NCBI GenBank assembly: GCA_000708835.1 | Contig: DF237105.1 | Location: forward strand, 106,328 to 170,327 | DNA length: 64,000 nucleotides | From: Klebsormidium nitens | Lineage: Eukaryota; Plantae; Klebsormidiophyceae | Direction: 5' to 3' | Notes under the pieces: generated by a model | What the model saw: the letters and a program-made list of their open reading frames with translations, nothing else | Database searches by the model: none | Told to the model about the DNA's origin: nothing | Shown here: in pieces, positions 4,231-64,000 of the stretch | How positions within the stretch are numbered: position 1 is the first letter of the stretch | Layout: each line of letters begins with the position of its first letter | Position numbers and translations under genes: made by a program

Positions 4231-4330
4231 TCCGACAGGAGGCGGTCGAACTTTCTATTCCTGCGGCCGGTGTGGTTGAGAATATTTTCAAAGTTTCCGT
4301 AAGTCGCTCAGATGTCATGCCGTGATGCAG

Positions 4331-10674: not shown

Positions 10675-12851
10675 CCTCAGTGGCGCAATTGCTCAGAGCT
10701 GCCCGGGAGATATTGTCACGGCCGCTCAGTGGCTGTCACCGAGTCGAGGGTGGAATGGCCCGGGCCTATGTTTCACTTGCAGCTTTGGTTGTGCCCCGCT
10801 CCCTAAGCAAACACGGCCACCTGAAGACAGAGAAAGGAAGAAGCATGCCAGCATACCAATGGGGGGTATCTTTATGATGCATGTTACGGTATTACATTCT
10901 GACATTACTACCAAACTGTTTTCTAAGATTTGAAATCTGTAACCCAATGCTATTGCAGGCCGCCGCGGCCTACCGGCCGCGGTATACTAAGCTAACTTTG
11001 ACTGGACTCGTGGAGCAGGGACGATTGTTTTCAGCAACGGGATCCCTAGGCTTGGCCCGGGATTTCAGGATAATGGGATCCAGGGATTGCCCAAACCACT
11101 GAGCATCATGCTCGTATGCCACCTGGCGCTTCGAGGCAAGCTGATCTGGTTACGGTACGGAGCCCGACTAGGTACCGGTACGGCGGTAGTTTCTTGGGTA
11201 GTACCTATACTACCGTACCTGGCTACCTAGTCCTCGGCCGGCCGGGCGCCGCCGACGTCATGGTACGTACGCGAAGCGACGTACCGGGTGACGATCATCG
11301 GATCGGGTCACGGGTGGCGCGCGACAGGCGCGAGTGCCGCCGCCGCGCCGGCGAGGCTGCTGGGGGGGCCGGGCCCGGCCCCAGGCTGGCAGGCGCCAGG
11401 CTCGGCTCGGCGCCCACCGGCGTCCGGGCAGCCGGGCCTTATGGGGGCAACCATATTAACACATGTCAGGCTGTCAGCCATGTAATAATAAATGATGGCA
11501 TGCCTGAGGTGACCAGGTAAGTTGAGGTCTAGAGGTCGCGCGGTAGTCGCGTCAAAAGGTGTTCAAAAGTTCGCATGGAAAAGTGAACGAATGACCGGGA
11601 AGAGGCGCACGCATGGTGCACGTATGCCGGCATTGGCTCAGTGGTTGGGCATGTTGGCCCGTGGGCGGCAGCAAAAGAGACATCATCAGGAGGTAGTAGC
11701 CGCCACCAAGAAGGGTTCAAAACATTCGACATAAGTTGCAGACGGGCTGCAGACGGCCCCTGAGGCCTAGGGGAGTGGCATCGTTGGACTCCCCCACGAC
11801 TCCCCGCGTTGACTAGCTAGACTTCGATCGTGTATGTGCACTTCGGCTGAACTGAATATGTATTGATCTACCTTTCGGCTCCGTGCATCCGTGGGCTACT
11901 GGGCGGCTCAGAGACACGGCTGAGAATGTGCAGGTTCGATCCAAAGTACGGTAAGAATGGACGTCGGATTGCAGATAGACAGAGCCCCGAAATTGAGGCA
12001 AACTTGAAAGTGAACTCGCTAAATTTTAGACGGATCATCAGTGATCATCGAAGAAGATTCTGAATATGGATCAGTGTTGCCCTAAGAATGGAGACAGGCA
12101 GCCGGCCAATGTATGCCAGGAAAGGCTGTCGAAGGAAACAAATCAGATGAAAAGAATGCGAGATTTCGTGAATCACTCTCCGGATCAGTAGCGCTGAAAA
12201 TCAATTAAAAGAAAGACGCTTGTTCAAGGGGTTTCAAAAGCTCTGGCCCTAAGTATTTTTAGCACATGGGATTCGTGCATTGGTAATATATGTAGATCTT
12301 GTCGGAACTCAAAATGCAGGCCAGACGTGAGCCGCGTACGGTACGCCGCTTAGCTAGTAACTTAATTTGCATGACGGGATTTGCATGTTAATGATCATGC
12401 ACATGCTGACTACAATATTCTTTGTATACATCGATGTATGCGTGTGACATGTCAATGGCTGTATATTTGTGTTGCCAATACGCCCACGTGGAGGCAACCG
12501 CCGCCAACACTGATCGCTGGGCGACGGAACAAATGATGCATCTGATTGCCACAAGTAACTTTACAACACCTGGACCGGACCCTGTTACAGGGCAGGCTGT
12601 GCTTCCGACTTTGCGGCGGGCGGCTGTGCACGATATGTTTGGATGCTGGTAATGCCATGTGCATTATAGCATGGACTTGAATTCGTAGCGTCACCATCCA
12701 AATCCAAGATGCGCCTTGCCTGCATGTTAGATTCCCTCGACCCGGCTTGGAAGGGGTCAAGCTGCCAGACTACTTGATGACATTTGCAAACTCACGGTTC
12801 AATACTGATTTCTGTATGCCTGTTCCTAACCGCTCCATCTAGCATCTGCAC

Positions 12852-43600: not shown

Positions 43601-46186
43601 GTCCGGACGCCGGAGAGGGCCGTTCCGACGGTGCTCCCGCCGGTTCGGACGCCCGGAACATCTAGAGCGAGGGAAGAGGCGAGGAAGCGGGGAATCGAGG
43701 GCGGGGGCGGGAGGGAGGACAAGAGGCGGCGGCAGGACGGTAACGAGGGGGGAGATAAAGTGGACGTTGGGCTCCGAGGGGGGGTGGATTCTGGGCTTGA
43801 AAGCCGGGGGGGGGGAGAGGGTCTGGAGTTGAGTCTGGAGGAGAAACGTGCGGCGCAACTAGGGATGGCGGCGGGTGTGAGTGAAGCGGAGGAGCGGCGG
43901 CACCTGCGGAGCATTCTGGAACGGGTCCTTGGTAAGAGAAGCATATTGGATGGATATAAGTATGCATCTGCGTACCTATACATTGGTCATACTACATACC
44001 TGCTGTCTCCCTTCTCTCTTTTCTTATGGACATGGCAACCCCTGGGCGCCAGTGTTCAAATATGTAGTCGTCGATTAGTGGAAAAAAAGCGGCAACTTTC
44101 GGCCTCTCTGTTGGAGCGGACTGCGCCACTTAACGGAATGGGCGACCATCAGTAGACAGGAGAATTGTGAAAACTCGGATTGCTTCATTGAGCCGATAGG
44201 CAACACTGTATAAACCCATCACATTCGGTCGTTTTGCAGAAGTCATTGGCAGTTCCAGGCGTCTTTTTTAGACCGCACCTGTGGATGACCACGAGTGGAT
44301 CTTTTCATACTACCTGGTAGTTGGAGTGGAGCAAACAGGCAGAACAACCTACTCATGATTTCCGGTCGTTTGCAGAGGAGAAGCGCCGTCTCGAGGCGTC
44401 TCTTTCAGAACAGACCACCGCCCTCGAGCTCGTCACACGGCAAAGACGACACGACGGCAAAAGGGCGAAACGGGCGGAGGCGGAGTGTCGCACGCTGACC
44501 GGTGAGCACAGCCCATTAGACGATGGGTTTGTATCTGAGTTTTAAAGCAGCAAAAAGCTAACACCTTTTCAGTGATATGGTTCCAAGGGTTCAAGGGGCG
44601 GAGGCGGAGTGTCGCACACTGACGGGTGGGGACAGCCCTTCGGAAAAGAAAATTGTAACAGGTGGCATGAATACAGGGATATTTTCTGTAATAGAGTCCA
44701 CTCTGACGTTGCTGAAAGGGCAAAAAACGGGGAGGCGGAGTGTCGCACGCTGACGGGTGACGAAAGCCCTTGGAATGTCGACCTTAGATTGACAATCTGA
44801 ATGAGAGTTTGTTTCGTTCAAGATTTTGGTGAGGTCCGGAGAAGGACTCTGGTGATCCATTGAAAGGGCCCAGAGATCTGGTACGCACTCTCTTTCCTGA
44901 CGCTTCGTATACGGTCCGGTGTATGGGATTCGAGGAGTTCTGAGGGTGCATTGAATATTTGAGGCTGCAGTCCTTCGCAATTCCCTCCGAAAGTCGCTTT
45001 GCGCTTTGTTTCCTAAGAGACCTGCCGATAATCCACAGAAGACGAACTAGCAAGTATCCGCGTCGCAACAAACATATGTGTCAGGCTGATGTTACTTCTG
45101 TCCAGAACAGCCGAAGTAGATTAAGGCTCGGCGTCGCTTGCAAAGTGTAAGAGCTCATCTGCCATTCTCTAAGTAATCTGAATATGACTTGACCGAACAC
45201 GTCGATACCTGGAGCATTTACTCCGTAAACTGTGTTTCCGGCACATATATGTGGACACGCTGGTCCGGCCATCAAAACTGGACTTGTAAGCGCACTCCAG
45301 TTAAGGCAAATCGTGGCAAATCCTGATTCTTTCTTTTACTTCGTCTTTCAGGACGCCTGCACGAGCAGGGCCTGCGGCTGGAGGCCATTCTGCGCGAGCA
45401 TGCTGACGTGTGCCACCGGCTGGGGCGGAAGGAACTAGCGGTGGCGGCACTGCAGCGGCACATCAAGGTCGTCTCAAAGGTACGCACCGTCACACCTCCC
45501 CACATCTATAGGGTCAGAAAACACTACGGCTTGACTTGCTCCTTCTGAATTTTGAAAGTTGGTTTGAATGTCTTTGAGAGGAGTTAGCGGCGTTGACGCT
45601 ATGGATTCCCATTATCTCAGGATGCGAACGGAACGAGTTCCTCAAACCGCCTCTTACTCTTGAACTTTGTAACCTTGGGGTGAGTCTGAGAGTTTTGAAT
45701 CTGCTGAAGAGTCGAATAGTCGTACTGGATAGGGGGCTGCCCTTGACGTAGTTTTCTCCATGTTTTGAACTACAATTGTAAGGCTTGGACCGGGAAAATG
45801 TTCTCTCTGGATCTGGGGACTTGGTTTGGGAGACATACGATAAGCGCTTTCTTATTGCAGATTCGTGCGTCGTTCTTTTTATCAAGGTTGCCGGCAGATT
45901 CGGAATTTGATGGCGATGTAGAAGGTAGTTCGAGAGGCCGAAAGCGGGTGACGTCATCTGCAGACCAGCCGTTCGCCCACCTTCGCGGTTCTCACGTTCC
46001 CAAGAATGTATTTTGATTTCCTTTGCCACTTGCCAGCGTCTGCTGGTTTCACTTTCATCGCTTGGCCGATTAGATTTTGTCTTAGTAGCTCATCGCATGA
46101 TTCTCTTTTTGCAGGAGAACCGTGAGCTTCACGAGTCTCTGCGAGACAGGGAGAACAGGATTGTAACACTGGAGAGGCATCCTTGA
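31678..46186 (+). CDS. Very long coiled-coil protein (~2,600 aa), family not recognised
   Basis: Exons 31678-31941, ~32403-32516, ~33030-33254, ~33526-34032, 34904-36817, 37449-40220, 40780-40971, 42080-42979, 43391-43931, 44376-44501, 45352-45479, 46115-46186; phases were checked and consistent from 34904 onward. E/A/L/R/K-rich heptads; no motor or catalytic motif seen. Confidence 0.85.
34440..34990 (+). repeat. Intronic array of acceptor + exon-start copies (3 echoes plus live exon)
   Basis: GAGATGC anchor at 34484, 34631, 34779 and 34931 (live); periods 147, 148, 152. Confidence 0.9.
37820..38880 (+). repeat. Coding tandem repeats in the coiled-coil gene
   Basis: 14-aa units (KLEEALELERVKAG / KLEEVLDLERAKLG / ELGEALELEREKVA) at ~37820-38060 and 7-aa units (ELESVRR / ELEGVRA / ELESVRK) at ~38580-38880. 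Confidence 0.8.
41128..41200. repeat. Partial copy of the telomere-like element at 1360-1497
   Basis: Shares GGGTGCGGAGCGGGTG followed by T-rich and GGTTAGG sequence with 1431-1460. Confidence 0.55.
41380..42160 (+). repeat. Intronic array of acceptor + exon-start copies (5 echoes plus live exon)
   Basis: Copy starts at 41385, 41557, 41704, 41852, 41938 and 42080 (live, IRDLPSIPSTLEQSHAASLRELESL); all retain an AG. Confidence 0.9.
42930..43235 (+). repeat. Exon-end + donor echoes (2 copies)
   Basis: GAA(T/C)GGTCGCCTG at 42958 (live), 43084 and 43209. Confidence 0.8.
44220..44775 (+). repeat. Echoes on both sides of a 126-nt exon
   Basis: Upstream acceptor copy CGGTCGTTTTGCAG near 44227; donor copies GGCGGAGTGTCGCAC at 44479 (live), 44603 and 44734. 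Confidence 0.85.
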
Positions 46187-47740
46187 TAAAAGTAAAGGAC
46201 GTGTTCAGTTTTAGAGCGTGTACAGCAGCCAGCCAAATGCTTGTCTTTTTGCTGGGCTGAAAAGAAAATATAGATCAAGGGATTGGTAAAGAAGAGCGAC
46301 AAGAGGTTCTTGGCTGGTGTATCGATTATATCTACTCTCGAGAGGGGATTCTAAATTGCCCACTAGACCAGCTAGTTTTCAAACGTAGCCTCCAGAATGC
46401 TCAACTGCACCGGTACGGATTATAACCAGCTTCCCGCGAAGTTGAAGTGCCCAATGTATCTCACCGACTCCCTTCGAATCCCGACGTACTCACAGATCAC
46501 CGTCATAATCGGTGCAAATTAGCGTATATTAATATCACTTGCACGCAACTAGGTGTTCCGGAAGCTGTACAGTCACGCATTCATATAGCAGTTCTGCTCA
46601 GCGGCTGCCTTTGTAACCCTTGCATTAGATGCTGATTCAGGCTAACTCGAGCGACTCACGTAACTAACCGCACGCAGCCGGCATAAGTTGTTTTTGCGCC
46701 TGACATGGATCACCGAAAGAAACCATTAATGATGATAAACTTGAAAGCTTCCATGAAAGTAACTCGTACGGCCCACAGCCTGGCACTTGTTAAAGCCGTG
46801 CATGCCATTGTCTCATGCAGTTGCAGGGATTGAACTCAATTCTGCCTTAATATATGCATGGGAGGTCTTTCGTTTTATACGTTCCAACCGTTTATCGCGG
46901 TACGGAGGCTCGGCCAATCTCACTGCACAGGCCTGAAAGTCAATCAAAATTAATTCAGAAGGACAAGTTAGTTGGCGTCTCCAGCCCGGGAGCGCAGCAA
47001 ATCCTTCGGGGGCGGCCTTTGCGCCTTCAATGCATTGCCCGGTCAGCTAATATTGGCTGCTGACACTCGTGAAAAGGCCCCATGCACAGTGTTAGTACTC
47101 GGACCAGTACTAGAGTCTCAACTGCAGGCGGGCGGGCCCGGGCCAGCTAGGGCTGACGCAGTACCGGCAGGGCCGGGCCTCTGGAGCATCAAGCACTGCA
47201 AAAACACTAGGGTCAGATTGGTAGATTACGTTGAATAGTAACGAATAATATCACACCGGCCCTGCACCCCCCGCAGCCAAATATGTGTACTTCAGCTGTA
47301 TAATTAAACAGTCACCAACAAGCTAGGATACGTCCTTAGCAGATTGCTTAGTAAACGTCCAATCACCAAAAAAGCGGACCTTGCCATGCATGAGTGTTGG
47401 GATGCATCGAATAGATCAGTAATATTATCGGTCACGCTGCTAAAAGAGAGATGTGAGGAAGATACGAGCGCGCCTTCGATTACAAGATTTCCTCGTTACT
47501 GGCAACTCGCGAGGTGACGTCCTTCCCCTGTCTCTTGTCGATCCGTTTCATAGCGATCCTCAGTCGTGAAGAGGCCTAGCTATTACTGGACTCAAGATTG
47601 TCCATGCATGACTGAGCTGCGGCAAACTGTTCCGATGAATCGGATCAATACGAAGCAGCCCACATTTCCGAGCCGTCGATAAGCATTTGAGTCATATTTT
47701 CAACGTTCAGGAATCAGGATACGTCCGTCATTGACAAAAA

Positions 47741-47965
47741 CCCTGGCGACCATCAGCGTTTTGGGATCTTGTCGAATGTTTGTCGAATCGACATAAAATC
47801 AATACAAAATAAAATCAACACGGGATCCAGTGTCGATTCGACGGAGAAGACTTTTCAACCACTATCTGGATTGTTGATTCAGACGCGAAACTTTATCGAC
47901 GGTCTTGAAGCTTGTTGAAATCATCTTGAAAATATCCAGTTCGGTAAATCAATGTCGATCACGTA
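47741..47965. repeat. Left (sub)terminal repeat region
   Basis: AAAATCAATACAAAATAAAATCAACACGGGATCCAGTGTCGAT, plus further TTGTTGATTC, TTGTTGAAATC and AAATCAATGTCGAT motifs. Confidence 0.65.
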
Positions 47966-48391
47966 GCCAGCGTGGCTAAAGAATGTCAACATCAGCTGTG
48001 CACCTGCTGCAGTGCATGTCTGGCATTGTTTGCATGCGCTACTACCGGATCTCAGTCTGCCAACTGAGAAAAGGAGAAGGACCTCAGCCTCAGGTTCTGC
48101 AGAAGCACTGGGGCTGTGGTCACCTTAAGATGCAGGTCACTTTTGCCAATTGTGGACACCAGCTGCTATCCTGCGGGCCATCCTGGGAGCTGATGAGCTT
48201 GCGGAGCAACTGTGGAGAGTGGTAGCGCGTCGTGTGGAAGTTAGCATTGCGTTCACTTGAAGCTCTCTGGCAGTAGTACTTGAATCTCAGTAGCTTAAGA
48301 TGGAAGACCAGCTAGATCTGCATGGCGGCGGAGCCAGATTCATGGGACTTTTCTCTGGGATTTTGGGATCCTGGCTTTGTTCTGCTTGAAG

Positions 48392-51300
48392 ATGGTCAAC
48401 CACTTCATTGATAATCTTTTTCCCCATCTTTCTCCCACGAGACGAGCAGTTGCACGGACCACCAATGGGCAGGGCAGTCCCCTAGGAGGCGGCAGAATTG
48501 TGTGTCGTAGATGTAAGAGGAAGTTTGTGTCTTTTCAGCAGCTGACCAACCATCAGCGAAAGGAGGGGGGCTGCACTCCTCCAAGGTCTACTGCATCTGG
48601 TACTGCAGTTGCTTCCTCAACTCCTCCACCATCGTCGCCGCTCCGGCAGTTCAATGCTTTTGATGCTCCCCTTGGACACTCTCTGTCCCCCGTTCCAGAT
48701 TCCCTAACTCCTCCACAAAACCATACTTCTAGTCAGGATGCAGCTGGCGCGGGTAACTCTGAAGAAGCTGATACTTCATACCACCATTTAATATCTCCAG
48801 AGCCAAGGACATCTGCAGTAGGACAGCAGGTAGGCGCGCGCTTTGAACAGATTCCTTGCCGCGATGGGCCCAGCACCTTTGCTTCTGAAGATCCAGAAGA
48901 AGAGAAGAGGCAAGAGGTAGTAGCATTCATCAAAAACTGCAATGGGGGCAAAGGGCTCTCACGAAAGGACCAGAACTGGCTACTGAGTTTCGCCGAGGTT
49001 CCTGGGTTGGAGAGCGATAAGGACGTGCAGAAGCATATTGACGCGCTTCCGAAACCAGTGAGCCCCAATTCTGCCACAATCTCCTGTGAGCTTGGCCAGT
49101 GGATCTTCGGATTGTGTGGGCCTGAGAGGGACAAGAAAGTGGATGCCTTCTGATGGTGGCCTCTTTATTGCAATCTATGAATGCAGCCTGTGGAGACTGT
49201 CTCAATGGGCAGCCTCAAACCTCAAGTGTCTACCAGATACCAGTTTGTCGGTTGTACCTTCATCGCTAGGCCCTTTAGCTGGAAGTCCTTCAGCTGTGAG
49301 CTTTGGTGGTACGGGAAGTTTCATTGTCCATCTATGAGCAAGCAGTGTAAACTTATGCATTCCGTCGGTATTCAGTGTCAAGGGTCATGTCTTTCCCCTT
49401 ATCGTCTTTCATTTTAAGTTCAGGAGCTTTTGGTTTTAGCATGAGGATCTGGTAGCTGATAGATCGTGGTTTGTTTGCTACGCAGGAAGGCTGGTCCAGG
49501 ATCAACCTTGCGGACCCCACGGATGGACAAGACCTCTTCCTCGACTATTGTGATGCATATACTGCTGTTTTGGATCTGTGGAGGGATCCCATACACGCTG
49601 GAAAGCTGATCTTGAAGCCGAGGGTACTGCGCGGCAGAAATGGGGAGCGCCGGTACAAAGAGGCCCATACCAGCGTCTGGTGGAATGAAATGCAGGTAGG
49701 CTTTTTCAGACCTGACCCGCGGCTAAGTGGTTTTGCTTCTTTTGAAGTTCTGGTTATGTTTGCAGTTCCTCAAGATCCAACTTTGAGCAGCAAGTTATGA
49801 GAGAGCTTCTGCAGCGATGTATCCAAGTGGGCAGCCGTCAACGTTCCTCCAGGGACAAAAGCGAAGTTGAGATGAGTGTGGACACTATTCTTGAAGCATT
49901 CAGGACTGTGGTTGTTCACATAAGTGTGTCTGCATTTGCAGAAGTTGATTCCCGCTTCGGACACAGTGCTGGCGCTGATCCTTTACAGCGATGGGACACC
50001 GCTCAGTTTGAGCGGACGACTCAAAGTGCGCCCGGTCATTTTGAGCCTTGCCAACATTCCCAAGGAGCTTAGGGGGAAGCTGTCTGGTTGGGTTCTCGTG
50101 GGCTACATTCCATACGTGGAACCACGTCCAGAGTTTAGTCTCGCGGAGGGCTCGGAGGCGCTCCGCTTACGGCAGCTCCAGATATGGCACGACTCCTATC
50201 GGAAGATTCTGGAGCGCTTGAAACTTTACACTCTGACGTAAGGTTCTGGATCCATAGTTTGTTCAGGTCACCGCACAGTCAAGTTTTCTAGGCTGGTTTA
50301 CTTCCTTGTCTGTCTTGGACCTGGGATCAGTTGGCTTGTAGCTCAACAACTGTTAATACCTGAGAATGTTTTTGTTCTTGTGATCATGTCTACGAGTGAA
50401 GTGAGACCTCTCAAATGGGGAGCACCTTCTCATTGAACTTGTTTCTTGTGCAGGGGCATGGAGGTTGAGGATGCAAACGGAGTAAAGACGACAGTTTGGC
50501 CCATGATATACGCCGTCGTAACTGACTGGCAGGAAGGATGTGTCGCTGCAGGTACAAAGAGCGGCAACAAGACCAATTGTCCTTGTCATACGTGCCTTGT
50601 GTTGGCTTGCGATCTTGACGATCTAGTTGCAGGCAGACGCGCCGAGCTGCGGACAGAGACAAGGATGAAGCAGATCTACGATCAGGTTGTGGAGCTCCAC
50701 AAGAAGGGGGGGTGCACTGCGGTCATTGAGTCCTCAAAGGCTGGTCAGCAAACCCGGTTGAGGTACGTGGAGGTTCTGCTTGTCATCCTTTGCACTCAAG
50801 AGATAGGGTTTTGGGCGTCAAGTAGTATGAATGATAACCTTGTATATTGCGCCGCAATCAGCTCATGCACAATCTGCCTGGCAAAAGCGTCGAAGGCTGC
50901 CAGTGTTACTGCCATCTGCTGATCTCTGCATTGATGCGATTCAGTCTCCTTGAGAAGAATGATGCGGCTGTCCAGGCTGGTCGTGAGCGCTTATCTTCAA
51001 AACACGGGCAAATTCAAATCAGTATTTCTACAGTCCGACCCGCATCAGGGCTTGAATCAAGAGTCTTTTCCTACTACCGATTGGAGTTCGGGAATCTGCA
51101 CAAGTCTGTATGGGTTGGATCATCTGATCTCCGTTTGATCTGAGCACTGCGTTTTGCAGAACGCGCTGTGGGATTGGAAGGGCGGCAACACAAAGTCTGG
51201 GAACGTTTATCGTTCCATACTACCAGAGATCATGCACCAGGTATGCGGCGTCACAACGCAGCCTGTGACTTTGTTTCAAAGTTTCGTTTTGCTACTTTAT

Positions 51301-53842
51301 CCTTCTCCAAACGGCTGCTGAACTGAGGTAACTTTACTGAACTTGAAATTCCAAGCAACACCGGCAAAAGGGTGGTCTTTCCGTCCTTCCCGACGCAGAC
51401 ATCCCGTCCAGATCCTGCTCAGATTTTCAAAAAGCACTACGCTTTGTTCTGGCAGCTAGACCACGGGGTAGTACCCATGCTCTTCGAGCTCGTGGGCAAC
51501 TACGCCAAGGACAAGTTTGGAGCGAAGGAAGGGAATAAGCGCCTGGCTTTAGCGAACAAGCGCTTTCTTTCTTTCCGGAACACACACCCGGGTCTCCGCC
51601 TGCCCAACATCGACTTCCTCGGCGGTTCCTCTTTTGTGACTGCCTTCGAGCATCGGCACAGTCTGTCGGTGGGTGTACGGTCTCAGCAGATCTCTGTTTG
51701 ACCGGTGATTCTACCGTTGGTTGCTGTTAACTCAATTCCGGGTGCCTATACCCGTAAGGTACTGCTGATCTGATCTGATTCTAAGCCACTCGAATCAAAG
51801 GGAATGCCCTACGTTGATGTGGACTTGACGGTTATCTGATCAAAGGACGAACGTAGCAACTTGTAGTCCCTGGTTCTCCAATCTCGTTGGTTACAACTCC
51901 GAATATTGAATCGTCCACACAGCCTGCCACGGAGACTTCTCTTTTTCCGCCTCTTTGCAGGTGGCCGTCTATGCAGTCGTGGGCGTCTTTACCCTGCCCA
52001 ATGGGCGTGACGAGATAACTCCTCTTTTTCGAGACTTTGCTGATGTGTACCTTGACTTCGCAGTCAGGCACAAGAGCCGAGGTCACACCGATGCGTCCTT
52101 GGCCAAGGTCGACGCTGATTGGGATAAGGTTCTAGCTAAGATGAAGAGGATTTTGCCATACCAGGCCTCGGGTTGGGGCACCTCAAAGGTACACACGAAC
52201 GCGCATTCGACCGAGTCGGTCAGTCTTAAAGGTCTCCCCGGGGAGTACTCTGCCGATAATTACGAGTCGAGTCACAAGAGGACGGCGAAGAATCCCTTCA
52301 GGGCTTCCAACAAAAACCATATGCAGCTGCAAATGGTAAAGCATGTGACCGACCGACTCGCCCTTCGAAAAGCGGGGAAGGATTACTTCGTTCCAACTCA
52401 AAAGGAGACGGCTCTCCGAAAACGGGTGAGTTGTTTTTCGCAGGCTTGGCCCCTTGCATCCTTTTATTCTTGCAAGTGCTGTCCTTCTCTTTCCTGGTCT
52501 CTGTTCATGTCTGTTTCTCCTTCCTTTGTTGATTTGTCGGGATGTTCTGGAGCGTTTCGACCAACTGAAACTTCTCGAAGTTCATCAAGCGCTCAGTGAG
52601 GGGGCTTTTCACATTGCCAATGGTGTTTGACGCGCTTTGAAGGCTCGACTGCTTCTACAGGACTATCTCTAAAACTATCTGGTTGTTGCGAGTGGGTGTG
52701 TTTCTTCCTCTTGGTCGATCTTGCCTAAACATCTTGACGTTCCTGCCTGCCACAAAGTAGGCTAACTTTGCGTGGATGCAACGCTACAGATGATTTTCTC
52801 CAAAAGATGTTTTTTTTTCATCCTGATTGCAGGCTAGGGACCAGAAGACCAACCTGCTAAGCGTGAAAGGTCGCCCTCTCCGGCTCTTCCGACTGTCCAG
52901 GCAGTCCCTGCGGGATGGCAATCGAGATCCCGCACTTCTCGCACAGCCCGAGCTGGTCCATCTCGAGCGCGTTCTTCGTTCGCACCTCGGGGGAAATCCC
53001 AGAGGTACGCGAGCTTTGCTGGCGAACCTTCCTACCGTCCAAGACGCCAAGGTGAGAGGTGACTGAGATCGACCGATTCAACTCTGTTTTGGGTTTGTGC
53101 TGCTACATCGCAACGTTCTGGTAGTTCTTTGGACTGCGGTCGTTTAGATTCGAAGCTCTTCAAGAAGTGAGCAAGTTGTGGATGCGACGAAGTTGATTGT
53201 GTAATGATGCTCAGTCCTCAAAGCGGAAGCTTTGGTTCGAACGATGAATTCTGCTTAAGTCTTATGTCATTAGATTGCCAAAGGATTGCTTGCTTTCGGT
53301 GCTACAGTCGCCGAAACGTTGAAGCTGTTGTACACTGTTGACGACAATTGTCATTCTGCCGGGTGCGAAGCTCAACGGGTTCGCTTCTCATTATGCAGGT
53401 TATACGACACATGACGCTTGCGATTGCAAGAGCGCGCCAGCCTGACGGCAGTTTGAAGACGGAGTTGGCTCGGGCGAACCCATGCTTCGGGCAGAACAAG
53501 CGGCCCGTTTTCAGCAGCGTGGTTGTGGATGGAGTAGGGCCGGAACGACGAGGGCGATTGGAGCGGACCGATTGGTATGCACAGCTTCGTTTGTTGTTTT
53601 CCTGTGTTGATCACCGAGGTCGGAAGCGCGCCTATGCGTTCGTGAAGTGGTATCAGAAAACGGGCCCACAAGACGGAACGAGGAGCGTTCGTTTGAAATG
53701 GGAAATGGTAAACGGGCCCAACGGGGTTGAGCAGGTTCGGTATGACGTCATAGGTCTTCAGACAATAAAACGGCTCGAGCACATTCTCCCAGATCCAAAT
53801 AACGAAGGTATGTTTTATGTCAATGAAACGCGTCTGGTCTAG
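48392..53842 (+). CDS. Plavaka-family DDE transposase, spliced, apparently intact
   Basis: Exons 48392-49057 (CxxC..H..C zinc finger), 49486-49695 (ERRYKEAHTSVWWNEMQ), 49942-50237 (LILYSDGT..PVILSLANIPKELR..LVGYIP), 50454-~50760 (AVVTDWQEGC..CPCHTC), 51160-51240 (NALW..PEIMHQ), ~51459-51669 (LDHG), ~51961-52425 (KVHTNAH..YSADNYESSHK), ~52833-53050, ~53399-53842 (YAQLRLLF..YAFVKWY..HILPD). The junction at 50760-51160 was not resolved. Confidence 0.85.
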
Positions 53843-55393
53843 GGCCGCGCATGCGGCGCAAGGTTGCTAAGACCGTCAACAAAGTAAGCGTAGTTTAGTA
53901 ACAATTATTCCATTAATCTGACTCAAGAGCGCTTGATTGGATCAGACAGAATTGTACATTACGACTAACATATGTTATTGAAGTTTGAGTTGTCAGTTCC
54001 AATACCGACACTTGTTTCGGGGCTTCTCGACATTGTCGCATTTAACAATTTTCTTTGTCTGTCACTCTTCGAGCTAGTGCAACCAGTTGCATGGCAAAGG
54101 CGCGCCAGGTAGGCACGCTATGGAGAAGCTCTTTAGAGCCAGCACATCATATATGCACACGATCAATTGCGGCGCTCGATCAAGTTGCACATGCATGAAG
54201 CATGGTGCAACTTCAAGCATGCGATGCAGCCGGCCCGGCCACATATGAGCCCCCATTAACTTGTGGAACGGAACCACTGCGGGGCCCGGGCCGGGGAGCT
54301 GAGGTTATCCATTGAATGTCGACGTGACAGCCCGGCCTTTTGCACTACCGTATATCATGCATATGCTCGAATATGCAATGAGCTCAATGGCACACATATA
54401 TACTTAAAACGGCAGGTTCCATCGTGACCGACCATGTCTTATATATCTCGATATGCTTGTGCGCGGCAGGCTTTCAATTGATAACGCTCAATCTCATGCA
54501 AAGTTTTCAACTCGGAGGCGAGTCGAAGTTCGTCTGCATCGCGCGTGCATTATGTCTTGTTACTCATGAGCGCACGAAGCGTTTCTATTATTAATGGAAA
54601 CGCATATGGCCTCGAACCGTTGCAGTCAAATGTGATTAGTACAGTAACAGTTACAGAAATTACAATTTCGCTTACCGCTGCACGTGATTGAGTCAAATGT
54701 GATCATGAACAGAAGTCAGACGATCATTACCGTTGAATGACAAAGCCCTCGTCGACTAAGCAGCGCCGCGGCGCAATCTTTCGTTCTTTGACTGCAGCAA
54801 TCAGTGCAATGGACAATCGGATCATTGTACGTTGGCGGCATGCCAGGACAACTGGCCGGACATATTGTTGAGTGGCTCATGTTGAGTGCGCAGTATAAAA
54901 GCTAGACGATGTTGTATTTTGGCAAATCTTCTATATGGTTGTATAATGAGGGAACAATTGAAGCCCGGCCCGCATGCCAGGACCATCGTCACATCATCGA
55001 TGTAGGCTAATGACTTGAGTCCCCACGATCGCTGGTTGCCGCATCCGATCAGGCTCGATTTGTCATGAGGAGGCCTGGCAGATCATAGTGCCCATAGTCC
55101 GAGTCGACATGCAGCATTGCTTACGATCGTTAAGTTGTTCGCCAGTGCATAAAGTCCAAGTCGATCAGCCGGGCACTTGCGTTCATCTGCGCGGGCGCTG
55201 CCGGCACTCCTCATTGCATACGATTACGACCATTTGATCGAAGGGCACATGCAACTGATCCCGTCTATACCACATCGCAGCTTTGATGTGCGGGCGGCGA
55301 GCCGCTGTGCAAGATTCCGGTGGGCTGTCAATCGACCGACGCCTGCAGTACATGTTCAATGTAAAACTTTTCAATAGATCTACCTCTTGTCTT

Positions 55394-56308
55394 TCAATCC
55401 TTACATTGATATATTTGCCACAATGTTTCAAAGGCTTGGAGCACCTGATCACAAGTCGGTCTATTCGAAGGGACTTTTTCAGAGAGCGAAGCTATTAGAA
55501 GAAGCACCTTACTCCAGTCCGTTGATTCCGACAACTCTTTTCTGACTGAAGCCCGATCGAGCCCTAGTAGATCCTCCAACAGGAGACCTACGGCATACAT
55601 GTCGCTTGCTTTTGAAAAGCAGCTCCCTAAGATCAGCTCTCGAGCAACGTACCTATACCTTTTAGCGTACTGCTCTTCCTCTTTGACGGACTTGAAGCTC
55701 CGATGACTCTTACAGTCAACAAGCCTACTCGCCAAACCAAAGTCGTGCACAGCCAGCTTCATAGTCAATTCACGTTCGTTGAAGTGGACGAGAATATTGT
55801 TGGGAGTCAGGTCGTTATGTACAATACCTTTACTATGAACGTGCTGGATTGCCCTTAAGAGATCCAAGCACGCCCCCACAAGAACCTTGGCCTTCCGCAT
55901 AATCTTAGCGAGGGGCTTCTCCAAGCTGCGGTCATCCCGTTTTTGAAGGACAGAACCTAAAGATCCCTGATTGAAGTAAGGGAAGAAAGCCAGTGGTAAA
56001 CCAGAGCCGCCGATGCACACAGCGAAGGGCTTCACGACGTTGTCGTGCGAGAAGGCCGATGCTAGAATGACCTCGTACGAAAGGTTTTGGACTGTGTACA
56101 CAGTACTGTGATGATAAGTCAGGCCTCTGCCGCGATACTCTTTTACAGCAACCCTGGTCCCAACACGATCAGGAAAGACACTAGCCCAAGAAGACCCCCC
56201 TTCAATCAACACTTCGTACACTGTTCCATACGACCCACTTCCCACAGCGTCAGCCGCGTCTGGCATTTGCAGCATCTCTCGCTCCTCTACCGTCAGCATC
56301 CGCAGAGA
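55394..56308 (-). CDS. Ser/Thr/Tyr-type protein kinase domain exon, non-RD (HND)
   Basis: GSGSYGTVY, VAVK, alphaC Glu (YEV), HNDLTPNNIL, HDFG, ARE, SDMYAVG, RPT; 305 uninterrupted codons after a CTGCAG acceptor. Confidence 0.92.
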   Translation of the reverse strand, partial: SLRMLTVEEREMLQMPDAADAVGSGSYGTVYEVLIEGGSSWASVFPDRVGTRVAVKEYRGRGLTYHHSTVYTVQNLSYEVILASAFSHDNVVKPFAVCIGGSGLPLAFFPYFNQGSLGSVLQKRDDRSLEKPLAKIMRKAKVLVGACLDLLRAIQHVHSKGIVHNDLTPNNILVHFNERELTMKLAVHDFGLASRLVDCKSHRSFKSVKEEEQYAKRYRYVARELILGSCFSKASDMYAVGLLLEDLLGLDRASVRKELSESTDWSKVLLLIASLSEKVPSNRPTCDQVLQAFETLWQIYQCKD

Positions 56309-56473
56309 CTGCAGCACAACAACATGGTCAACCAAGAGTATATGAGCGACACTTCTGCAATCTCAACTGAGAAATCTTTGACTGAGCAGAACCGCAACGT
56401 GCTCATTGTGCGCTCGTACTGGATTCTCAGTGGACAACTTTTAGATGCCCAAGTGGAAGCAGTGAGCTTTTAC

Positions 56474-57930
56474 ATCCAAGATGTGCCACTGATCACAGCC
56501 AGAAGGGCCTCGGTGCATGACGTGGCAAACTTGGGTGATTGCTAAAGCAACCGACCACCAGATGCCGGACTGATCCTTGAAACTAGAAAGGTAGAAAATG
56601 TGGACAGAACTTGCTTGTAAACATATCCAGACGCGAATTTTCTGAACAGTAAAACCACACCAAACAAGCTGCCCAATAAATTGATGTGAACTCTGCGCAG
56701 CCAGGCGAGCCTGATGCAGCATCCTGCTTTGTACGTCTGCGCTTTCCGGACAAAAAACTCTTCAAACAGGTGTGACTTCATACAACACATACCTTGTCCC
56801 CTATGGGTGACTCATACTCCAGCGATCCTGCGGCGCCATTGACCCCTCCCTCGATGCCCGAGGCAGCTTGACAGCTCGAAGTGCTGGCAACTGCGCTATT
56901 AGGGCCTCCACTGCCGCTCTTCACCACCTTCCCCACGTTCTCCTCTTTTGGTGCCCCCACCATATGCTTCTCTCCCCTACGTGCGCCAGCACTCCCGTGC
57001 TCTCCTAAACTGCCGGCATCCGGCCTCGCGAACGCCGCTTCTGCCTGCCCTGACTCTAGTGTCTCCGGGCCTGACCTTTGTATGGCAGCGTCAAGGCCAG
57101 CGCTCTCATCCTCTCTTTGCCCCTCCTCGGCAGCCCCACCTGCGTTTTGCTCCAGCCCTGGGCGGCAGTCCCTGCAGAGAACAAAGACATGTCTTCTATC
57201 GGCAGCAAGAACACTGCGCTTCTGCAGTGGACAATAGGCGCGCCAAGTATGCAACCCAATTGAGTTCACACCTGTTGGGTTTGCTGGCTTGGTAAACAAG
57301 CTCCCGTCCAATCAATGATCTTAATGTCACTTGCTCCAGATCAGAGTGGTTTGTTGACAGTGTTACACAGGTTTTGAGACGGGAGCTTTGGACTAGAGTC
57401 TATTTTACCAAGAGAAGCAGGCTACTGAAACTTGTCTGACATCTTTGAAAGCTACCCTTGAATGAGCAACGTGAGATTCAGCTTTTCCTTAGCTAAAAAT
57501 GCCTGGCATGCCCAGAAACCCTTTGCGAAACTGTGCAGTCATAAGAAGCAAAACTTGCCTGCTGCCCGGACCACCCCCGCGCTGCAAGGCCACCACGGCG
57601 CTGACTCGTACAACCGGCTTCTTTGCAACATTCCCTCGCTTGACCTTCTTGAAAATGCCTTCAATCTGTTTTAATCGATACTGCGGTTCAAATCGAAGGA
57701 ATGCAGAGTCCCAAAGCTTTCGCTCTGATTGGTAATATCTCATGAACAGCGCCCGCCACTTGCCCAACAAGTCCTTCTCTTTCGACAGCGCCGCATGAAG
57801 GTAGACATGAAGAGGCTCAACTAATGATGACGGCGCGTTTACCCTGACGAGCTCGCAGGGCACATCTCTGGAATGTACATTCTGCAGAGATGGGTACAAC
57901 GGCTCCTCAAATTCCCAGGTGCTCGTCATC
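56474..57930 (-). CDS. Probable upstream exons of the kinase gene
   Basis: AG/GT-flanked open segments FKDQSGIWWSVALAITQVCHVMHRG..HILD (56474-56582, phase 0 into the kinase exon), a low-complexity segment ending PIGDK|GTATGT (~56790-57180), and MTSTWEFEEPLYP..LLGKWRALFMRYY (~57530-57930). Some phases unresolved. Confidence 0.5.
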
Positions 57931-58861
57931 TCTGCCTTGCAGATAAGGCGGACGCCTACGCCCAACCCGCTGCTCTCCATTCGCAGCGCCCAGGCACAGA
58001 GCAAAATGCTGTCAACAAAACCTGCTCCTTCGTGCCGCGTGACCTGCACGAGTCACTCCAGTAACTGCAATCTGGTCACCCTGGACTTAGCCAAAAAACG
58101 ATGCTCCTTTCTATATAAACCGTGGTTGTGAAGCCCTGAGTAGCTACTGAGCCTCTCAAGAGGCTAGAATCTGGATTCAGGAACATCCGATCAGCACCAT
58201 TAGTGAGTGTCCTGATGAGCTACATCACATAAACAATTACCACCCAGAAGTGCTGAAAGATACAAAGCGGAAAGCCAATAGTCCACCTTTCTGTCACTAT
58301 TCAAGGTCTTGCAGAAAGTTCCAACTTGAATCTTGCTGCGCAACCCAACTCAGCAAGCCGCTCCCAAGGGTGCAAGCCATTACCAAATTGACGCCATGAC
58401 GGCTTCGCTTGCTGTATCAGAGGATGTATCTTTCCACCTAGCAGGATGAACCAGATTGAGTTGGTCATCTTTGGCTAGCCGCTAAGGCCCAAAGTTCACG
58501 AGGAGGACCCGGTCCTCGGAGCCTTCCGATCTGTGTACCTGTGATGGACGGTTCACATCAGCAGAATTCAAATGGCGGGAACGATTGATCGGACGGCAGT
58601 GACAGTAAGCTCTCCCCTCATCGACGATTTGTGTTGTGTATCCTTGACGGATGCAGCCGATATTATTGCCCTCCGATCGCACAGATTGGACATCGACGAC
58701 CGCTGTTTACCCCGCAACTACATATGCAGATTCAAATTTCGTTCTGCCTGCAATGATCTAGGTACTAGATTCGAGAAGCCAAACCGGGCACTGTGGCACA
58801 GCACAAGCTGACTTTCTCGTTGAGTCTATTCTCTAATTCTCACCAAGGCGCCTTAGGCGCC

Positions 58862-59426
58862 NNNNNNNNNNNNNNNNNNNNNNNNNNNNNNNNNNNNNNN
58901 NNNNNNNNNNNNNNNNNNNNNNNNNNNNNNNNNNNNNNNNNNNNNNNNNNNNNNNNNNNNNNNNNNNNNNNNNNNNNNNNNNNNNNNNNNNNNNNNNNNN
59001 NNNNNNNNNNNNNNNNNNNNNNNNNNNNNNNNNNNNNNNNNNNNNNNNNNNNNNNNNNNNNNNNNNNNNNNNNNNNNNNNNNNNNNNNNNNNNNNNNNNN
59101 NNNNNNNNNNNNNNNNNNNNNNNNNNNNNNNNNNNNNNNNNNNNNNNNNNNNNNNNNNNNNNNNNNNNNNNNNNNNNNNNNNNNNNNNNNNNNNNNNNNN
59201 NNNNNNNNNNNNNNNNNNNNNNNNNNNNNNNNNNNNNNNNNNNNNNNNNNNNNNNNNNNNNNNNNNNNNNNNNNNNNNNNNNNNNNNNNNNNNNNNNNNN
59301 NNNNNNNNNNNNNNNNNNNNNNNNNNNNNNNNNNNNNNNNNNNNNNNNNNNNNNNNNNNNNNNNNNNNNNNNNNNNNNNNNNNNNNNNNNNNNNNNNNNN
59401 NNNNNNNNNNNNNNNNNNNNNNNNNN
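58862..59426. other. Assembly gap (N run) within the putative transposon
   Basis: N bases. Confidence 1.
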
Positions 59427-62400
59427 CGGAAGAGGCCCGCCTTGCACACATGCTGGGGGATGACGCTGGAGAATTTGCGACGTTGGTCACTGCCTTGACC
59501 AAGAATCCAGCCGCTCTCGCTAAAGCAAAGGCAGCCATAGCTACTGCAGCGGGTCAGTCTGAGGGCAATGCCAATGGCAAAAGGAACAGGCCACAAATGA
59601 CGTCACTGTTCCAAGACAACGAGAGCGATGAGGAGTCGGGGGAGGATGATGATGCTGGCGGCGCTGAGGCAGCCGACAAAGAGCCTTCAGATGAGCTGTC
59701 TGGTTCCGAGTACAATGAGGGTGAGGATGATGGTGAGGAAGAAACCGACGGCGAGGGCGATGATGACCTGGAGGAGGAGGACATTGCCAAAGAGCTGGGT
59801 TCTGAAGAGGCGCAGAACGGTCCTGAAAGGAGTAAGGCAACTCTCACATGTAACTTTGAGACGTAATGTTTAATCATTAGATTTTTCCATAAGTCTGAGC
59901 AGAATCTGCACTGATGGTTGTCTTTATTTCTTGAGAGCAGCAAATAATCAGCCATGCGATCAAAAGCATCCGCCATCTCAGTGGGAATATTGACAGCAGA
60001 CAGGACAAAGGCAGTGACTGGTCTTTGATGCATGAAATTCCTGCACCAGCTTGGTGTCAGCTGCCATGGGTTCAGATTCGCAATGCATTCCAGAATTGAA
60101 GAGGTTTTTGAAGACTAGCATTCTGAACATCCTGACTTCTGCAGATACATCTCCGAGTTTACAACCTCTTGTCAGCGCAGCCCAAGCTTAACAAAATTTG
60201 AAGCATCTTTCTGTATCACATGACAGCAGCTTACGTCAAGCCCCTGTTCTAATCTGCAAGGTGGTGAGGCTGATGGCGGCGATGCTGAAGAAGACACCGG
60301 GCTCGCTGACTTGTTGGCAGCGATTCCAAGGAAAGAAGAAACCCGCAAAAAGAGGAAGAAGTCTGGAAACAGTGGGGCGATCGTCCCCGTAACCACAAAG
60401 AAGGGTGAGTATCAATGAAGTGTGAATCTGAATTCTTGTACCGAAGAAAAGAACGGTCAGGCCTGGACGTGGTACTGAGTCAACTCAATTAATGCAACTT
60501 GCAATGTCTTGTGCTATGACATTGCCTCGATCTACTGAAACATACATCTGCTCCTCAACTGCTTATCTGAAGCGAAAGATAGCCACCTACAGTGTGACAA
60601 ATAGGCAGGTTGGATTTTCCTGCTAAAGTTGCCCACTCATCTAGAGATGTGCAGGCAGGGTCCTGAGATCTCAGATGCTTTACGAATGATAAGGTCCAGC
60701 TCTTTGATTCGAGTGTCTTTCTTTCTTTCAGGTGAAAAGTCTCAAGCCAATGGCCGTCGGAGTGCCGCAGGTGGCCTGGTGCTCAATGCGGCTTCCACCG
60801 AAGCTGGTATCGACCTCAACCTTCTGTTGCTGTCACACCTGAAAATGCAGCAGGCCCAAGCTGAGCAACTGGCGCGCAACGACAGGATGGAGAAGTCAAT
60901 GATTCAGCTTCTGAACTGCTTCAAGAAGTCAAGACCAGGGTCGAGCCAGCAAAGTCCTGATCCTACGACGTCTTCTGCGACAGTGACTCAACAGGTAATT
61001 TAGACTTTCTTTTTATCAATGTGGTGTCAGCCATCGTTGACATATATTCCTATCTCTTTTCACCTTGTTGTTTGCGGAGTGCTTTGTAGTTAAACCTGAT
61101 GGAACCAAGACCCCTTAAGGGGAGCGTCTTTTTCCTACAGATCCCAACGGTATGCCTCGCAACAGTGTACCAAAGTTTGAATGCATTATTGGACTACAGT
61201 AGCTCAGATCAGTGTGGTGTCCAGCATCACTAGGGCCAACTCCAGCTTGCAAACACTTCGAACAAAGTAGTACTAAAGGTGAAGGTCTTTAACACATGTT
61301 GCCAGGTCTTGCTTGAAGTCTCCTTACTTGCATTCAGAGCAGCAGAATTGCATAAAGGAGAGGCAGTACTACGAGAAACAAACAGCTTGTCATGGACCTT
61401 CGAATCATCTCCAAGGACTAAGCGAAAGATGCTTTGCAGGGCGGAGTATCCGAGCACCAGCTTGGGCTTCTCGAGAGACTTAAGGCAAACCCCAAGCTCC
61501 TCAATTCTGCAAAGTCCCCAATCAAAGTAAGTAGCCAGAATCCAAGAACAAACTCTGCAATCTCGGCTCACGTCGTGTCTAAGGCCAATCAATGCGCTTA
61601 GCTCCATTCCAGATCTGTGCTGTCTCGATGGTGCTTGTCCTACTATTAAGGGCTCTGGCACCTGATTGCTTCAAATTCTCTTTGAATGTGACCTACGCAA
61701 TGCTTGACCAATGACACCTTGTATTTCATGACGAATCTTGAGCATGATCTGGTATGGCTGCAGATCCATCTTCGTGGATCTTAGCCAGTGAACTCTTTGC
61801 AAAGCCCTTCGTTGTCTCCTGTGCTAAGACTAATTCCTATATTGCAGCTCCTGGTGTCCGGTGCTGTCAACCTGAGCATGCTCACATCCGGAGTTGCTGA
61901 CTCCGAGCTCATGAGAAGCAGCACCAAGCTCGCACTCCGGGTAGGACCTGACCCGGAGCAGGAGGAGCTGTTCGAGGAGCTTTACGAAGACTTTATCCAA
62001 GCTCACCAGATGGACAAGTTCCGCATGAAAAGGGGCCAGGCGGTGTCAACTATCCGTGCAGCAGCCACAAAGTGGTACAACCTGCCGGCGACTGGAACCG
62101 AAGACTGGTCGAAGATCACCACCGAGCTTCTTGCAGGCAAGGGTTTTTCTCACTGTTCCGGAGAGCAGGCAGCCAGACATACGAGCAATAGCTTCTTTCG
62201 CTTTGACGTTCGCTTCTCATCATGTGCGAGCTGCAAATTTCCTTCTTTGCCAGACCTGCTAAGAGAGGAGTAGACGTACTGCATGTACGTCAAGCTTCAA
62301 TTTCCGAACGTAAGCAACAGTTCAAGAGGATCCGTGTTCTCTCTTCTGAGCAACTTCGATCACTTTTGTCAAATGTGTGGAACAGCAACCGGTTTCCTTG

Positions 62401-63456
62401 TAGAACTGCCTTGGATGGCAAATCAATATGTTTCTCGCAAACAAGTTGAGTCCAGCTTTTTCGAGCAGCCTATAATTGAAATCGTCCTTGTACTCTTTTC
62501 AGATCTCTAGTATAATATCTGGAACTCTTTGAGACGTCTGCTGATGATATTCCCAATCGTCATTCGTGCATGACAGGTGACGCCTATCGCAAGGCAGGTA
62601 CGGACGCCTACGGCGACATTCGGTTCCGGACAATGCTGGCGAAGGCGTGCGGCGTCGACGTCGACCATCAGCCTGTACCCGATCAGTTGATCGTGACGAT
62701 CGCTCGGCTTGCACTGGTCGAGGTTGTGGTACGTACTCTCTAACCCTGTCCAGATCGGCCACCCCGACTGGGTGGCTCATTTGCTAGATGCAGATTGAGC
62801 ATTCTTTCAAACTTCGTCGAAACACGTCTCCTTCCAAATAATCTGCGAAGGGCTAGCTCCTCAATCTTTCCAATATACAGAGGGGACTGCGGTGATGGAA
62901 TCAGAAGCGCTTCCACCCTTTATGCCGTTGGATTGGCGTACACTCGTGCAGCGTAAAAGCAGCTCGGAAGTAGTCGACCATTTTTTTTATCGCGCGTGCA
63001 CCTTCCATTCTGTGGCCAGTCGGATTGTTCGGCAGCCTGGAGAGCTCTGATAACTTAGTAAAATGTCGAGCCTGATCGAGGACCGTATCATTGGGACATG
63101 TCCAGCTCAAACTGTAAGAAATGCACACCGTTGTCCTCGTTTGTACCAACCTGATGGTGCCCGGTACCAAGCTGACAGGGCCTCTCCTTTTGCCGCAGCT
63201 GGAGCTACATTTCCGGGGCATCAAGCGGTTGGAGAAGCAAGAGGCGAAGATGCTTCAAGTACGGGAGGAGGCTCTAGCTGGAGAGACCCGAATCAGCGCG
63301 TTTGTACTCGTTGTGGCACCAGAAGACCCTTCGGTTTGTCCGATGAGGCTTCAGAGCCGTGCAGGAGAGCGCGCGAAGGCACTGGCAGCAGCCGGGGCAA
63401 ATGAAAATGGTTCGACGGAGCAAACCCACGACAGCGCAGCGAACCCGAATCAGTAG
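59427..63456 (+). CDS. Spliced accessory protein of unknown function with a D/E-rich tract and basic NLS-like motif; 5' end in the gap
   Basis: Segments 59427-59831 (DNESDEESGEDDD..), ~60260-60404 (RKKRKK), 60731-~60994, 61847-~62143 (FEELYEDFIQAHQMDKFRMKRGQAVSTIRAAATKWY), ~62577-62727 and a probable last exon to 63456. Phases are consistent for the first three junctions. Confidence 0.6.
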
Positions 63457-63829
63457 TTAGATTAGCCAGTTTAGCTCGTTGTGATAACCACTGAAGTACT
63501 TCGTCACTACTTATGCATCTCATTTGACAAGACTTGGTCGGTATCCACACGGGCCCTTAGTGTCTAGAAGTAGAGTGTTGTCCCCGTATTGTTGTTGAGA
63601 CTGTTGAGAGTTGTAACATTGAAGGTTGTAACAGTTCAAGCGTTGTATCATGATCCAGTTTGCTCCAAGCGTTCTTCCAGATGAGATCGAAGTCGAGACA
63701 GCCATACAACTTGGAATGTGTGATGCATGTATCCCTGAATCATGATATCGTGCTTCTTACCACCTCCGTTGAAATGATGCTCAATCAACACGAAACGAGC
63801 GCTCGTTCAAGTAGGCATGCCCTTGTTGA

Positions 63830-64000
63830 TAATGTACGTGACTTGACGTTGAAAGATTATCGTCAAGTAAAATCAACAGCCGGCTGTTGATTTTACTTCG
63901 TTATATGCCGTTGATTCACAATCAACATTGATCATCCATTAAATCCAGTGTTGATTTTATTTGGTGTTGATTTTCTGTTGTTTCAACATGCGATCGACAA
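63830..64000. repeat. Right subterminal repeat region including a perfect 34-bp palindrome
   Basis: AAGTAAAATCAACAGCC|GGCTGTTGATTTTACTT at 63865-63898, plus repeated GTTGATT motifs to the window end. Confidence 0.8.

Follow-up and report, generated by a model that had tools for sequence, protein, structure and literature searches.

A probable PlavakaB-lineage transposon of about 16 kb with a protein kinase gene and an orphan gene in the streptophyte alga Klebsormidium nitens

PlavakaB transposons of Agaricomycotina have termini 5'-CATCA..TGATG-3', a target site duplication (TSD) of 2-3 bp and the motifs C(2)C and H(3-4)H (Kojima 2025, PMC12730594). The red alga Bostrychia harbours a giant Plavaka of 17-19 kb with three accessory genes, PAG1-3 (bioRxiv 10.1101/2025.02.11.637652). 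Plavaka-flanked giant repeats have been described in Amoebidium and active EnSpm-Plavaka in Auxenochlorella. The superfamily extends to red algae, chlorophytes, streptophyte algae and moss; the Spirogyra pratensis genome paper (PMC13519894) proposes vertical descent from an Archaeplastida ancestor. Here, we analysed a 64,000-nt stretch of the K. nitens genome (the window), taken from scaffold DF237105.1 of assembly GCA_000708835.1. Positions 47751-64000 are very probably one copy of an autonomous-type, cut-and-paste transposon of the PlavakaB lineage, about 16 kb in length. The gene order is a spliced Plavaka transposase (+), a protein kinase (-) and an orphan gene (+), hereafter gene 3.

The locus is similar to fungal PlavakaB (PMC12730594) in several respects. 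These are the match to Pfam family PF18759, the CATCA...TGATG termini, the 2-bp TSD, candidate C(2)C and H(3-4)H motifs that follow the second D and the capacity to carry an accessory gene. It differs in its streptophyte-alga host, in the many spliceosomal introns of its transposase and in its cargo, which is a kinase and an orphan gene rather than a TET/JBP dioxygenase. The putative PlavakaB assignment rests on the termini and TSD, which fit the published description exactly, with motifs that are candidates. The left CATCAGC lies at 47751, right ends are provided by relatives and the TSD of 2 bp by one relative, the metagenome contig L002 introduced below. For the motif order D, D, C(2)C, H(3-4)H, E, both D residues and a CHTC fall in Pfam-matched exons, H(3)H has two candidates and the candidate E, E104, is invariant in 8 close homologs. 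The PlavakaB lineage is within the CMCT / EnSpm-related DDE transposases. Like CACTA / EnSpm elements of land plants, which belong to a related DDE clade (CMCT), the element is large and has subterminal repeats and more than one gene, CACTA / EnSpm having a second gene. Its termini are CATCA, not CACTA/CAC..GTG, its TSD is 2 bp, not 3 bp, and its Pfam match is Plavaka, not Transposase_21. Membership of CACTA / EnSpm in the strict sense is ruled out by the CATCAGC termini and 2-bp TSD.

A similar size, the same transposase lineage and the retention of several conserved accessory genes over long evolutionary time are shared with the giant Plavaka of Bostrychia. The cargo is different: kinase and orphan gene here, the PAG cassette there. 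No conserved block of the K. nitens element has the Pfam domains of PAG2 (N6-adenine methylase/SET) or PAG3 (ParB-like/2OG oxygenase). The Spirogyra study concerns the same superfamily in the same broad host group; the accessible text of PMC13519894 covers transposase domains and phylogeny, and contains no Klebsormidium element structure, termini or cargo. The original prediction, made from the window's letters, described Plavaka as known mainly from basidiomycetes. The algae and moss in PMC13519894 make that description out of date. Since Plavaka has been published across Archaeplastida with vertical descent proposed, a fungal horizontal origin is not needed, and we rejected the need for such a transfer.

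Two relatives carry all three genes. The first, L002, is a Joint Genome Institute (JGI) metagenome contig of 16,472 nt with both element ends; its three genes are contiguous and ungapped. Comparison of L002 with 47751-63999 of the window yielded 20 collinear blocks, of 70-91% identity, with unalignable stretches between them. The second, K. nitens scaffold DF237989.1 (L010; 16,358 nt), was reached via the gene-3 protein P0017. It is ungapped and collinear with the window from the second coding block of the transposase, T2, to the right end, and its three genes follow the same order. Pairwise identity among the window, L002 and L010 is ~80-81% in aligned blocks (exon-block mean ~0.81), while introns and spacers are unalignable among them. 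Hence, the prediction of a single Plavaka-type transposon of more than 16 kb with cargo was upheld by three independent copies, which have the same three genes, order, orientation and termini.

The open reading frames (ORFs) have been preserved. All 19 conserved coding blocks of the three genes are open in the window, with 0 stops and 0 frameshifts. The ratio of nonsynonymous to synonymous divergence (dN/dS) against L002 is 0.16 for the transposase (1072 codons), 0.25 for the kinase and 0.29 for gene 3. Against L010, the corresponding values are 0.125 (793 codons), 0.24 and 0.35. All three genes are under purifying selection across lineages diverged to dS 0.45-0.75.

We examined the element ends. 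An inverted match between 47769-47826 and 63943-64000 had been noticed originally; it is indeed 58 nt long, ungapped and 81% complementary, and the pair is the sole long inverted repeat within the window. Motif AAAATCAACA was observed 5 times in the window against an expectation of 0.11, and every occurrence is at the two ends. Six termini were aligned. They have a common start, CATCAGCGTTT, followed by TGTCGA, TTGAA and two AAATCAACA blocks over ~76 nt. The left terminal inverted repeat (TIR) of the window copy begins CATCAGCGTTT and has TGTCGA and AAATCAAC(A) blocks. In the subterminal regions, TGTCGA/TCGACA repeats are found at 47770-47953 on the left, and 8 copies of ATCAAC/GTTGAT in 63784-63971 on the right. 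The element termini are CATCAGC...GCTGATG. Right ends with GCTGATG were seen in L002 and in a Logan contig (L009); in L010 the motif is present minus 1 nt.

The left end had been placed at 47741, overshooting the element by 10 nt. The match to L002 begins precisely at 47751, with CATCAGC, and the flank 47741-47750 (CCCTGGCGAC) is without counterpart at any other end. The TSD was determined from L002. In this contig the element occupies 126-16349 (16,224 bp) and is bordered by TG on both sides. The flanks (1-125 and 16350-16472) encode one Ty3/gypsy reverse transcriptase-RNase H domain, matching PF17917 positions 18-61 and 64-103, respectively. Their reading frame, ...ALR|TWRCYLEG..., is restored only by removing 2 bp (or 5 bp). 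Because the termini are symmetric CATCAGC and the frame is restored, the TSD in L002 is 2 bp (TG). A 3-bp TSD was ruled out in L002 (GTG vs TGC). As an observation in its own right, the insertion of L002 into a Ty3/gypsy-type retrotransposon provides a clean reconstructed empty site.

At the right, the window copy runs into the end of its scaffold. Window positions 45449-64000 are 100% identical to DF237105.1, N run included, and position 64000 is base 170327, the last of the 170,327-bp scaffold. Hence, nothing is readable beyond 64000. The right arm of the window joins the alignment of six termini at position 19, so exactly 18 nt are missing from the element. The equivalent 18 extra nt are present in L002, L009 and L010, and the window copy would continue for ~18 nt past 64000 into ...CAAACGCTGATG. 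A 28-nt continuation had been predicted. Judged on the relatives, its first 18 nt (...CACAAACGCTGATG) are approximately right, while its last 10 nt are host flank. The Logan contig L009 ends exactly at the C of CATCAGC, and DF237989.1 ends one base short. A contig stop at the transposon terminus, as in these two cases, is expected assembler behaviour at the edge of a multi-copy repeat. Both K. nitens scaffolds, DF237105.1 and DF237989.1, end inside or exactly at a terminus of this family. The family is therefore one cause of breaks in the 2014 assembly.

The second missing piece is at the N run, which is identical in the NCBI K. nitens record. Both sides of the gap are collinear, in the same orientation, with the ungapped L002 and L010. 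Hence, the two sides belong together. The equivalent interval of L002 has ~373 nt between matching bases and ~165 nt of these are present in the window; in L002 terms, the real gap is therefore probably ~210 nt rather than 565. Gene 3 of L002 begins within this stretch, with its ATG and ~50 codons (ORF start MAGGGG). The gap thus hides that part of the coding sequence and ~60 nt of upstream DNA, and the window copy of gene 3 resumes with ...EEARLAHM directly after the Ns. With the ATG and first codons inside the gap, the 530-aa NCBI model of gene 3 (start 59450) is 5'-truncated. A "357-aa ORF" across the gap was rejected as an artefact, since no reading frame can cross Ns. Both missing pieces, the 18 nt at the right terminus and the start of gene 3, are assembly losses only and not deletions.

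Could the 16 kb be a composite, with genes lying between independent AAATCAAC-rich repeats resembling miniature inverted-repeat transposable elements (MITEs), or with separate elements mis-joined across the gap? The gap parts the transposase-kinase half from gene 3 and, with the right terminus missing, both ends are not visible in the window copy. However, in L002 and L010, both ungapped, the three genes are contiguous and bounded by the same ends. Furthermore, the L002 unit as a whole interrupts an RNase H domain and is flanked by a 2-bp TSD, and the AAATCAAC blocks are confined to the element ends within the window. A composite is thus largely refuted and we regard it as highly improbable. 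The original prediction had itself named genes unlinked elsewhere, with ends forming an independent MITE family, as the outcome that would count against it; linkage is kept in L002 and L010.

A single element may still be immobile. We consider it a substantial possibility, at a little under even chance, that the window copy is a relic of a family that is or was active. No near-identical second copy or empty site was found among the sequences searched, the closest relatives seen being ~80% identical, and the TIR arms match at 81%. Conversely, every conserved coding block is open, and the missing pieces were lost in assembly. The imperfection of the TIR is a family trait because the arms of L002 differ in the same way. 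The coordinates of the single transposon and its parts are collected in Table 1.

Table 1. Parts of the transposon in the window (positions of the 64,000-nt stretch)
Feature	Positions	Strand	Evidence
Left terminal inverted repeat	47751..47826	+	~76 nt, imperfect; alignment of six termini, start of L002 homology
Left subterminal region and transposase 5' leader	47827..48391	+	Motif positions; conserved with L002 to ~47936
Plavaka transposase gene, spliced	48392..53842	+	PF18759 on three exons; NCBI model 907 aa
Tail-to-tail transposase/kinase spacer	53843..55393	.	No blastn match to L002 or L010
Protein kinase gene KFL_001560290	55394..58049	-	Pkinase E=5e-23; alignments; dN/dS
Head-to-head kinase/gene 3 region	58050..58861	.	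Gene orientations; patchy L002 conservation
Assembly gap (N run)	58862..59426	.	Comparison with ungapped L002; same Ns in NCBI record
Gene 3, orphan, seven conserved coding blocks	59427..63456	+	tblastn blocks; 5' end in gap
Right subterminal region and right TIR arm (63943-64000)	63457..64000	-	Last 18 nt absent, scaffold end

Searches for the transposase, kinase and gene 3 were made exon by exon. For the transposase, PF18759 (Plavaka) was matched by three collinear + strand ORFs, at model positions 43-99, 106-197 and 201-285 (E-values 8e-5, 4e-12 and 4e-5, respectively). One exon alone passes the gathering score of the family (46.4 vs 26.3 bits), and the public NCBI model also carries the Plavaka match. 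In all three copies (window, L002 and L010), the nine coding blocks T1-T9 (48368-53839) are open. T1 has a weak match to a C2H2-like zinc finger; a Pfam search of T5, T6, T8 and T9 gave no match. A word search with T7 returned only family members on short contigs. Enumeration of GT-AG pairs for a full exon-intron model produced too many solutions, and the T5|T6 junction alone could be fixed, by comparing the three copies. There, an intron follows ...EIMHQ: the Q codon is followed by GT, CAG precedes LDHG, and protein similarity stops at this point in all three copies.

All four motifs proposed originally as catalytic (YSDG, VTDW, IMHQ and NYESSH) are present. The D of YSDG is at 49990-49992 (D1, LILYSDG) and that of VTDW at 50524-50526 (D2, AVVTDW). 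The C(2)C motif is the CHTC at 50584-50595, ~20 residues after D2. D1, D2 and CHTC fall in Pfam-matched exons. The candidate catalytic H of IMHQ is at 51235-51237 and the E of NYESSH at 52264-52266. Splicing of T5 to T6 (51235 / 51456) joins MHQLDH, a candidate H(3)H. A second H(3)H candidate, HTNAH, is found in T7 at 52192-52206, 20 residues before the NYE glutamate. Residues H80, H84 and E104 of T7 are invariant in 8 homologs of 63-80% identity. RAG1 has the same 20-residue spacing (H937, H942 and E962), which would favour the E of NYE. The H and E assignments, that is, a zinc-binding H(3)H and a catalytic E, are thus candidates.

Two further genes had been noted beside the transposase. One encodes a kinase and the other is a multi-exon orphan. 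The kinase was identified from a match to Pkinase (PF00069; E=5e-23) on the minus-strand ORF 55394-56335, and a search with this ORF led to K. nitens protein KFL_001560290 on DF237105.1. The kinase-domain exon (55397-56362) has a G-loop GSGSYG (G32-G37), VAVK65, H173-N-D175...N180 and D198-F-G (DFG 198-200). The catalytic motifs are conserved in the element-borne P0001 of L002, which is 84% identical to the window kinase, and in P0002 of contig L003, which is ~50% identical and outside the element family. In a further homolog, P0004, N replaces the DFG aspartate. By its motifs, the kinase cargo belongs to the eukaryotic protein kinase superfamily, with predicted catalytic residues retained. 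It is distant from every solved kinase, the best PDB match having E ~5e-12, and a word search of 5.8 billion proteins identified only five relatives. A scan of a metagenome contig collection with the kinase alignment gave 342 pattern matches and 0 confirmed, the collection evidently being without these samples. The gene also has a low-complexity linker exon at ~56781-57311 and a conserved N-terminal exon at ~57545-58049; Pfam found no match on the N-terminal exons. The public NCBI model (P0003, KFL_001560290, 422 aa, 55449-57980) splices out most of the kinase domain, departing from it after ~145 residues, and has the C-terminus ...KVLTDL. The public models of both the kinase and gene 3 look mis-spliced.

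Kinase genes of ~50% identity, N-terminal exon included, occur on contigs L003, L004 and L005, where they adjoin neither Plavaka nor gene 3. Instead, the kinase homolog adjoins another conserved multi-exon gene, called gene X here; the regions with these neighbouring genes are L003:4100-9700, L004:600-10700 and L005:450-4650. By eye, gene X has the motifs D..C(2)C..H(4)H..E-like, with LTxDMK, CLYC and VHxCTMHAENR. The nearest ESM Atlas clusters are RAG1 ZnC2/ZnH2/RNase H and Transposase_21, with scores of 0.88-0.91. Pfam gave no match for gene X, and hhalign of the Plavaka exons against gene X of L003-L005 gave a probability below 1%. As a lead only, gene X may represent another CMCT-type transposase lineage that has this kinase as its partner. 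The partnership of kinase and CMCT transposase may then be a recurrent module that is older than the family.

Gene 3 was recognised by tblastn as conserved coding blocks, none of which matched a Pfam family. A full HMMER search with its most conserved exon, G5, among 1.84 billion representatives found 4 proteins, all from the element family. Hence, we describe gene 3 as an orphan. A word search with G5 also returned only short-contig family members, and ESM Atlas scores for G5 (<=0.85) were uninformative. The first half of P0017, a 560-aa protein model from K. nitens scaffold L010, is disordered and acidic/basic and includes a KKKKK patch; its second half is helical. An AlphaFold2 (AF2) model of P0017 has long helices, with a predicted local distance difference test (pLDDT) score of 59, and Foldseek of this model against PDB found nothing better than E=3. 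The P0017 model (L010:10001-14101) skips the conserved ~30-residue tail of exon G5. A further homolog of G5, 45% identical, is encoded at 266-661 of L011, a 2.3-kb metagenome contig. L011 also has a cluster of eight GTTGAT motifs at the contig end (2182-2338), which probably marks the right terminus of a more distantly related element from this group.

A rival account of this cargo is that the element is real, with the kinase gene and gene 3 being host gene fragments captured once and carried as neutral passengers. Large CACTA-type and Mutator-type elements commonly capture genes. Homologs of the kinase at ~50% identity exist outside the element family, on L003-L005, and constraint is relaxed in the disordered, low-complexity half of gene 3 (block G1, dN/dS 0.46-0.84). 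However, both cargo genes are complete, multi-exon and open in three lineages. Their order and orientation are fixed and the catalytic residues of the kinase are kept. Neutral carriage fits poorly because dN/dS is 0.24-0.35 overall, over dS of 0.45-0.75, in two independent comparisons. In the best blocks of the two genes, dN/dS falls to 0.10-0.16, the best block of gene 3 being at 0.10. We therefore judge neutral carriage to be improbable.

In the model that we put forward instead, the transposase would bind the ATCAAC/TGTCGA subterminal repeats and cut at the CATCA ends, in a DDE cut-and-paste reaction with RAG1/Transib-like zinc motifs. A divergent promoter is presumably shared by the two cargo genes, which lie head-to-head. 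The kinase and the nuclear-looking gene-3 protein would be accessory factors, kept for helping the element to spread rather than carried as neutral passengers. Possible targets are the transposase, host chromatin or silencing, and cell-cycle or damage signalling. A stronger version treats both the kinase, with its conserved N-terminal domain, and the orphan protein as obligate accessory factors of the transposon lineage. The element's own kinase would then modify the transposase, or host chromatin, silencing or checkpoint proteins, and so enable movement. We offer this version tentatively and think it rather unlikely as it stands.

Several points weigh against our interpretation of the locus as an autonomous-type transposon with functional cargo. 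First, the completeness of the window copy is deduced from relatives, its own right terminus and TSD being unassembled. Second, the TSD length rests on one complete insertion, in L002. Third, the transposase assignment rests on exon-by-exon searches. Fourth, the third catalytic residue is a candidate: an AF2 model of T7, made to test the candidate E, had a pLDDT of 45 and was unusable, and phmmer of T7 against PDB sequences, solved RAG1 and Transib included, found no match even at E=10. Finally, the selection seen on the two cargo genes might in principle be exerted at host level, and the cargo role is putative.

The transposon sits 1.6 kb downstream of a large host gene, which encodes 2624 aa and ends at ~46186. 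Upstream of the transposon are dispersed direct-repeat families, of 3-5 copies each, at 14391-15227, 19444-20139, 21218-22746, 34592-34989, 41553-42160 and 44461-44769. The repeat spacing is ~140-220 nt, apart from one interval of ~0.9-1.1 kb in 21218-22746. These repeats look like repeated exon units of the 2624-aa host gene.

Because Plavaka has already been published from green-lineage algae, this window adds a modest increment. Its practical yield is the exact ends of the element (CATCAGC, 2-bp TSD and ~76-nt TIR) and the flagging of faulty public models for the kinase and gene 3. The cargo of kinase and orphan gene in Plavaka seems unpublished. In our literature search on Plavaka and kinases, no kinase-carrying Plavaka element came up, the nearest case being the alpha-kinase gene of IS3EU in rust fungi (PMC12730594). 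IS3EU is likewise a DNA transposon that stably carries a kinase gene opposite to its transposase. However, its transposase belongs to another superfamily and its kinase is an atypical alpha-kinase, whereas the K. nitens element has a classical Pkinase-type domain.

Accessory genes that a transposon retains for millions of years are usually clues to its dealings with the host. Known cases are TET/JBP in fungal Plavaka, the methylase, SET and oxygenase genes of red-algal Plavaka, and the anti-silencing factors of VANDAL. A classical kinase under purifying selection in PlavakaB would add signalling or phosphorylation to this list. Klebsormidium, as an early-diverging streptophyte, is a tractable place to test the role of such kinase cargo.

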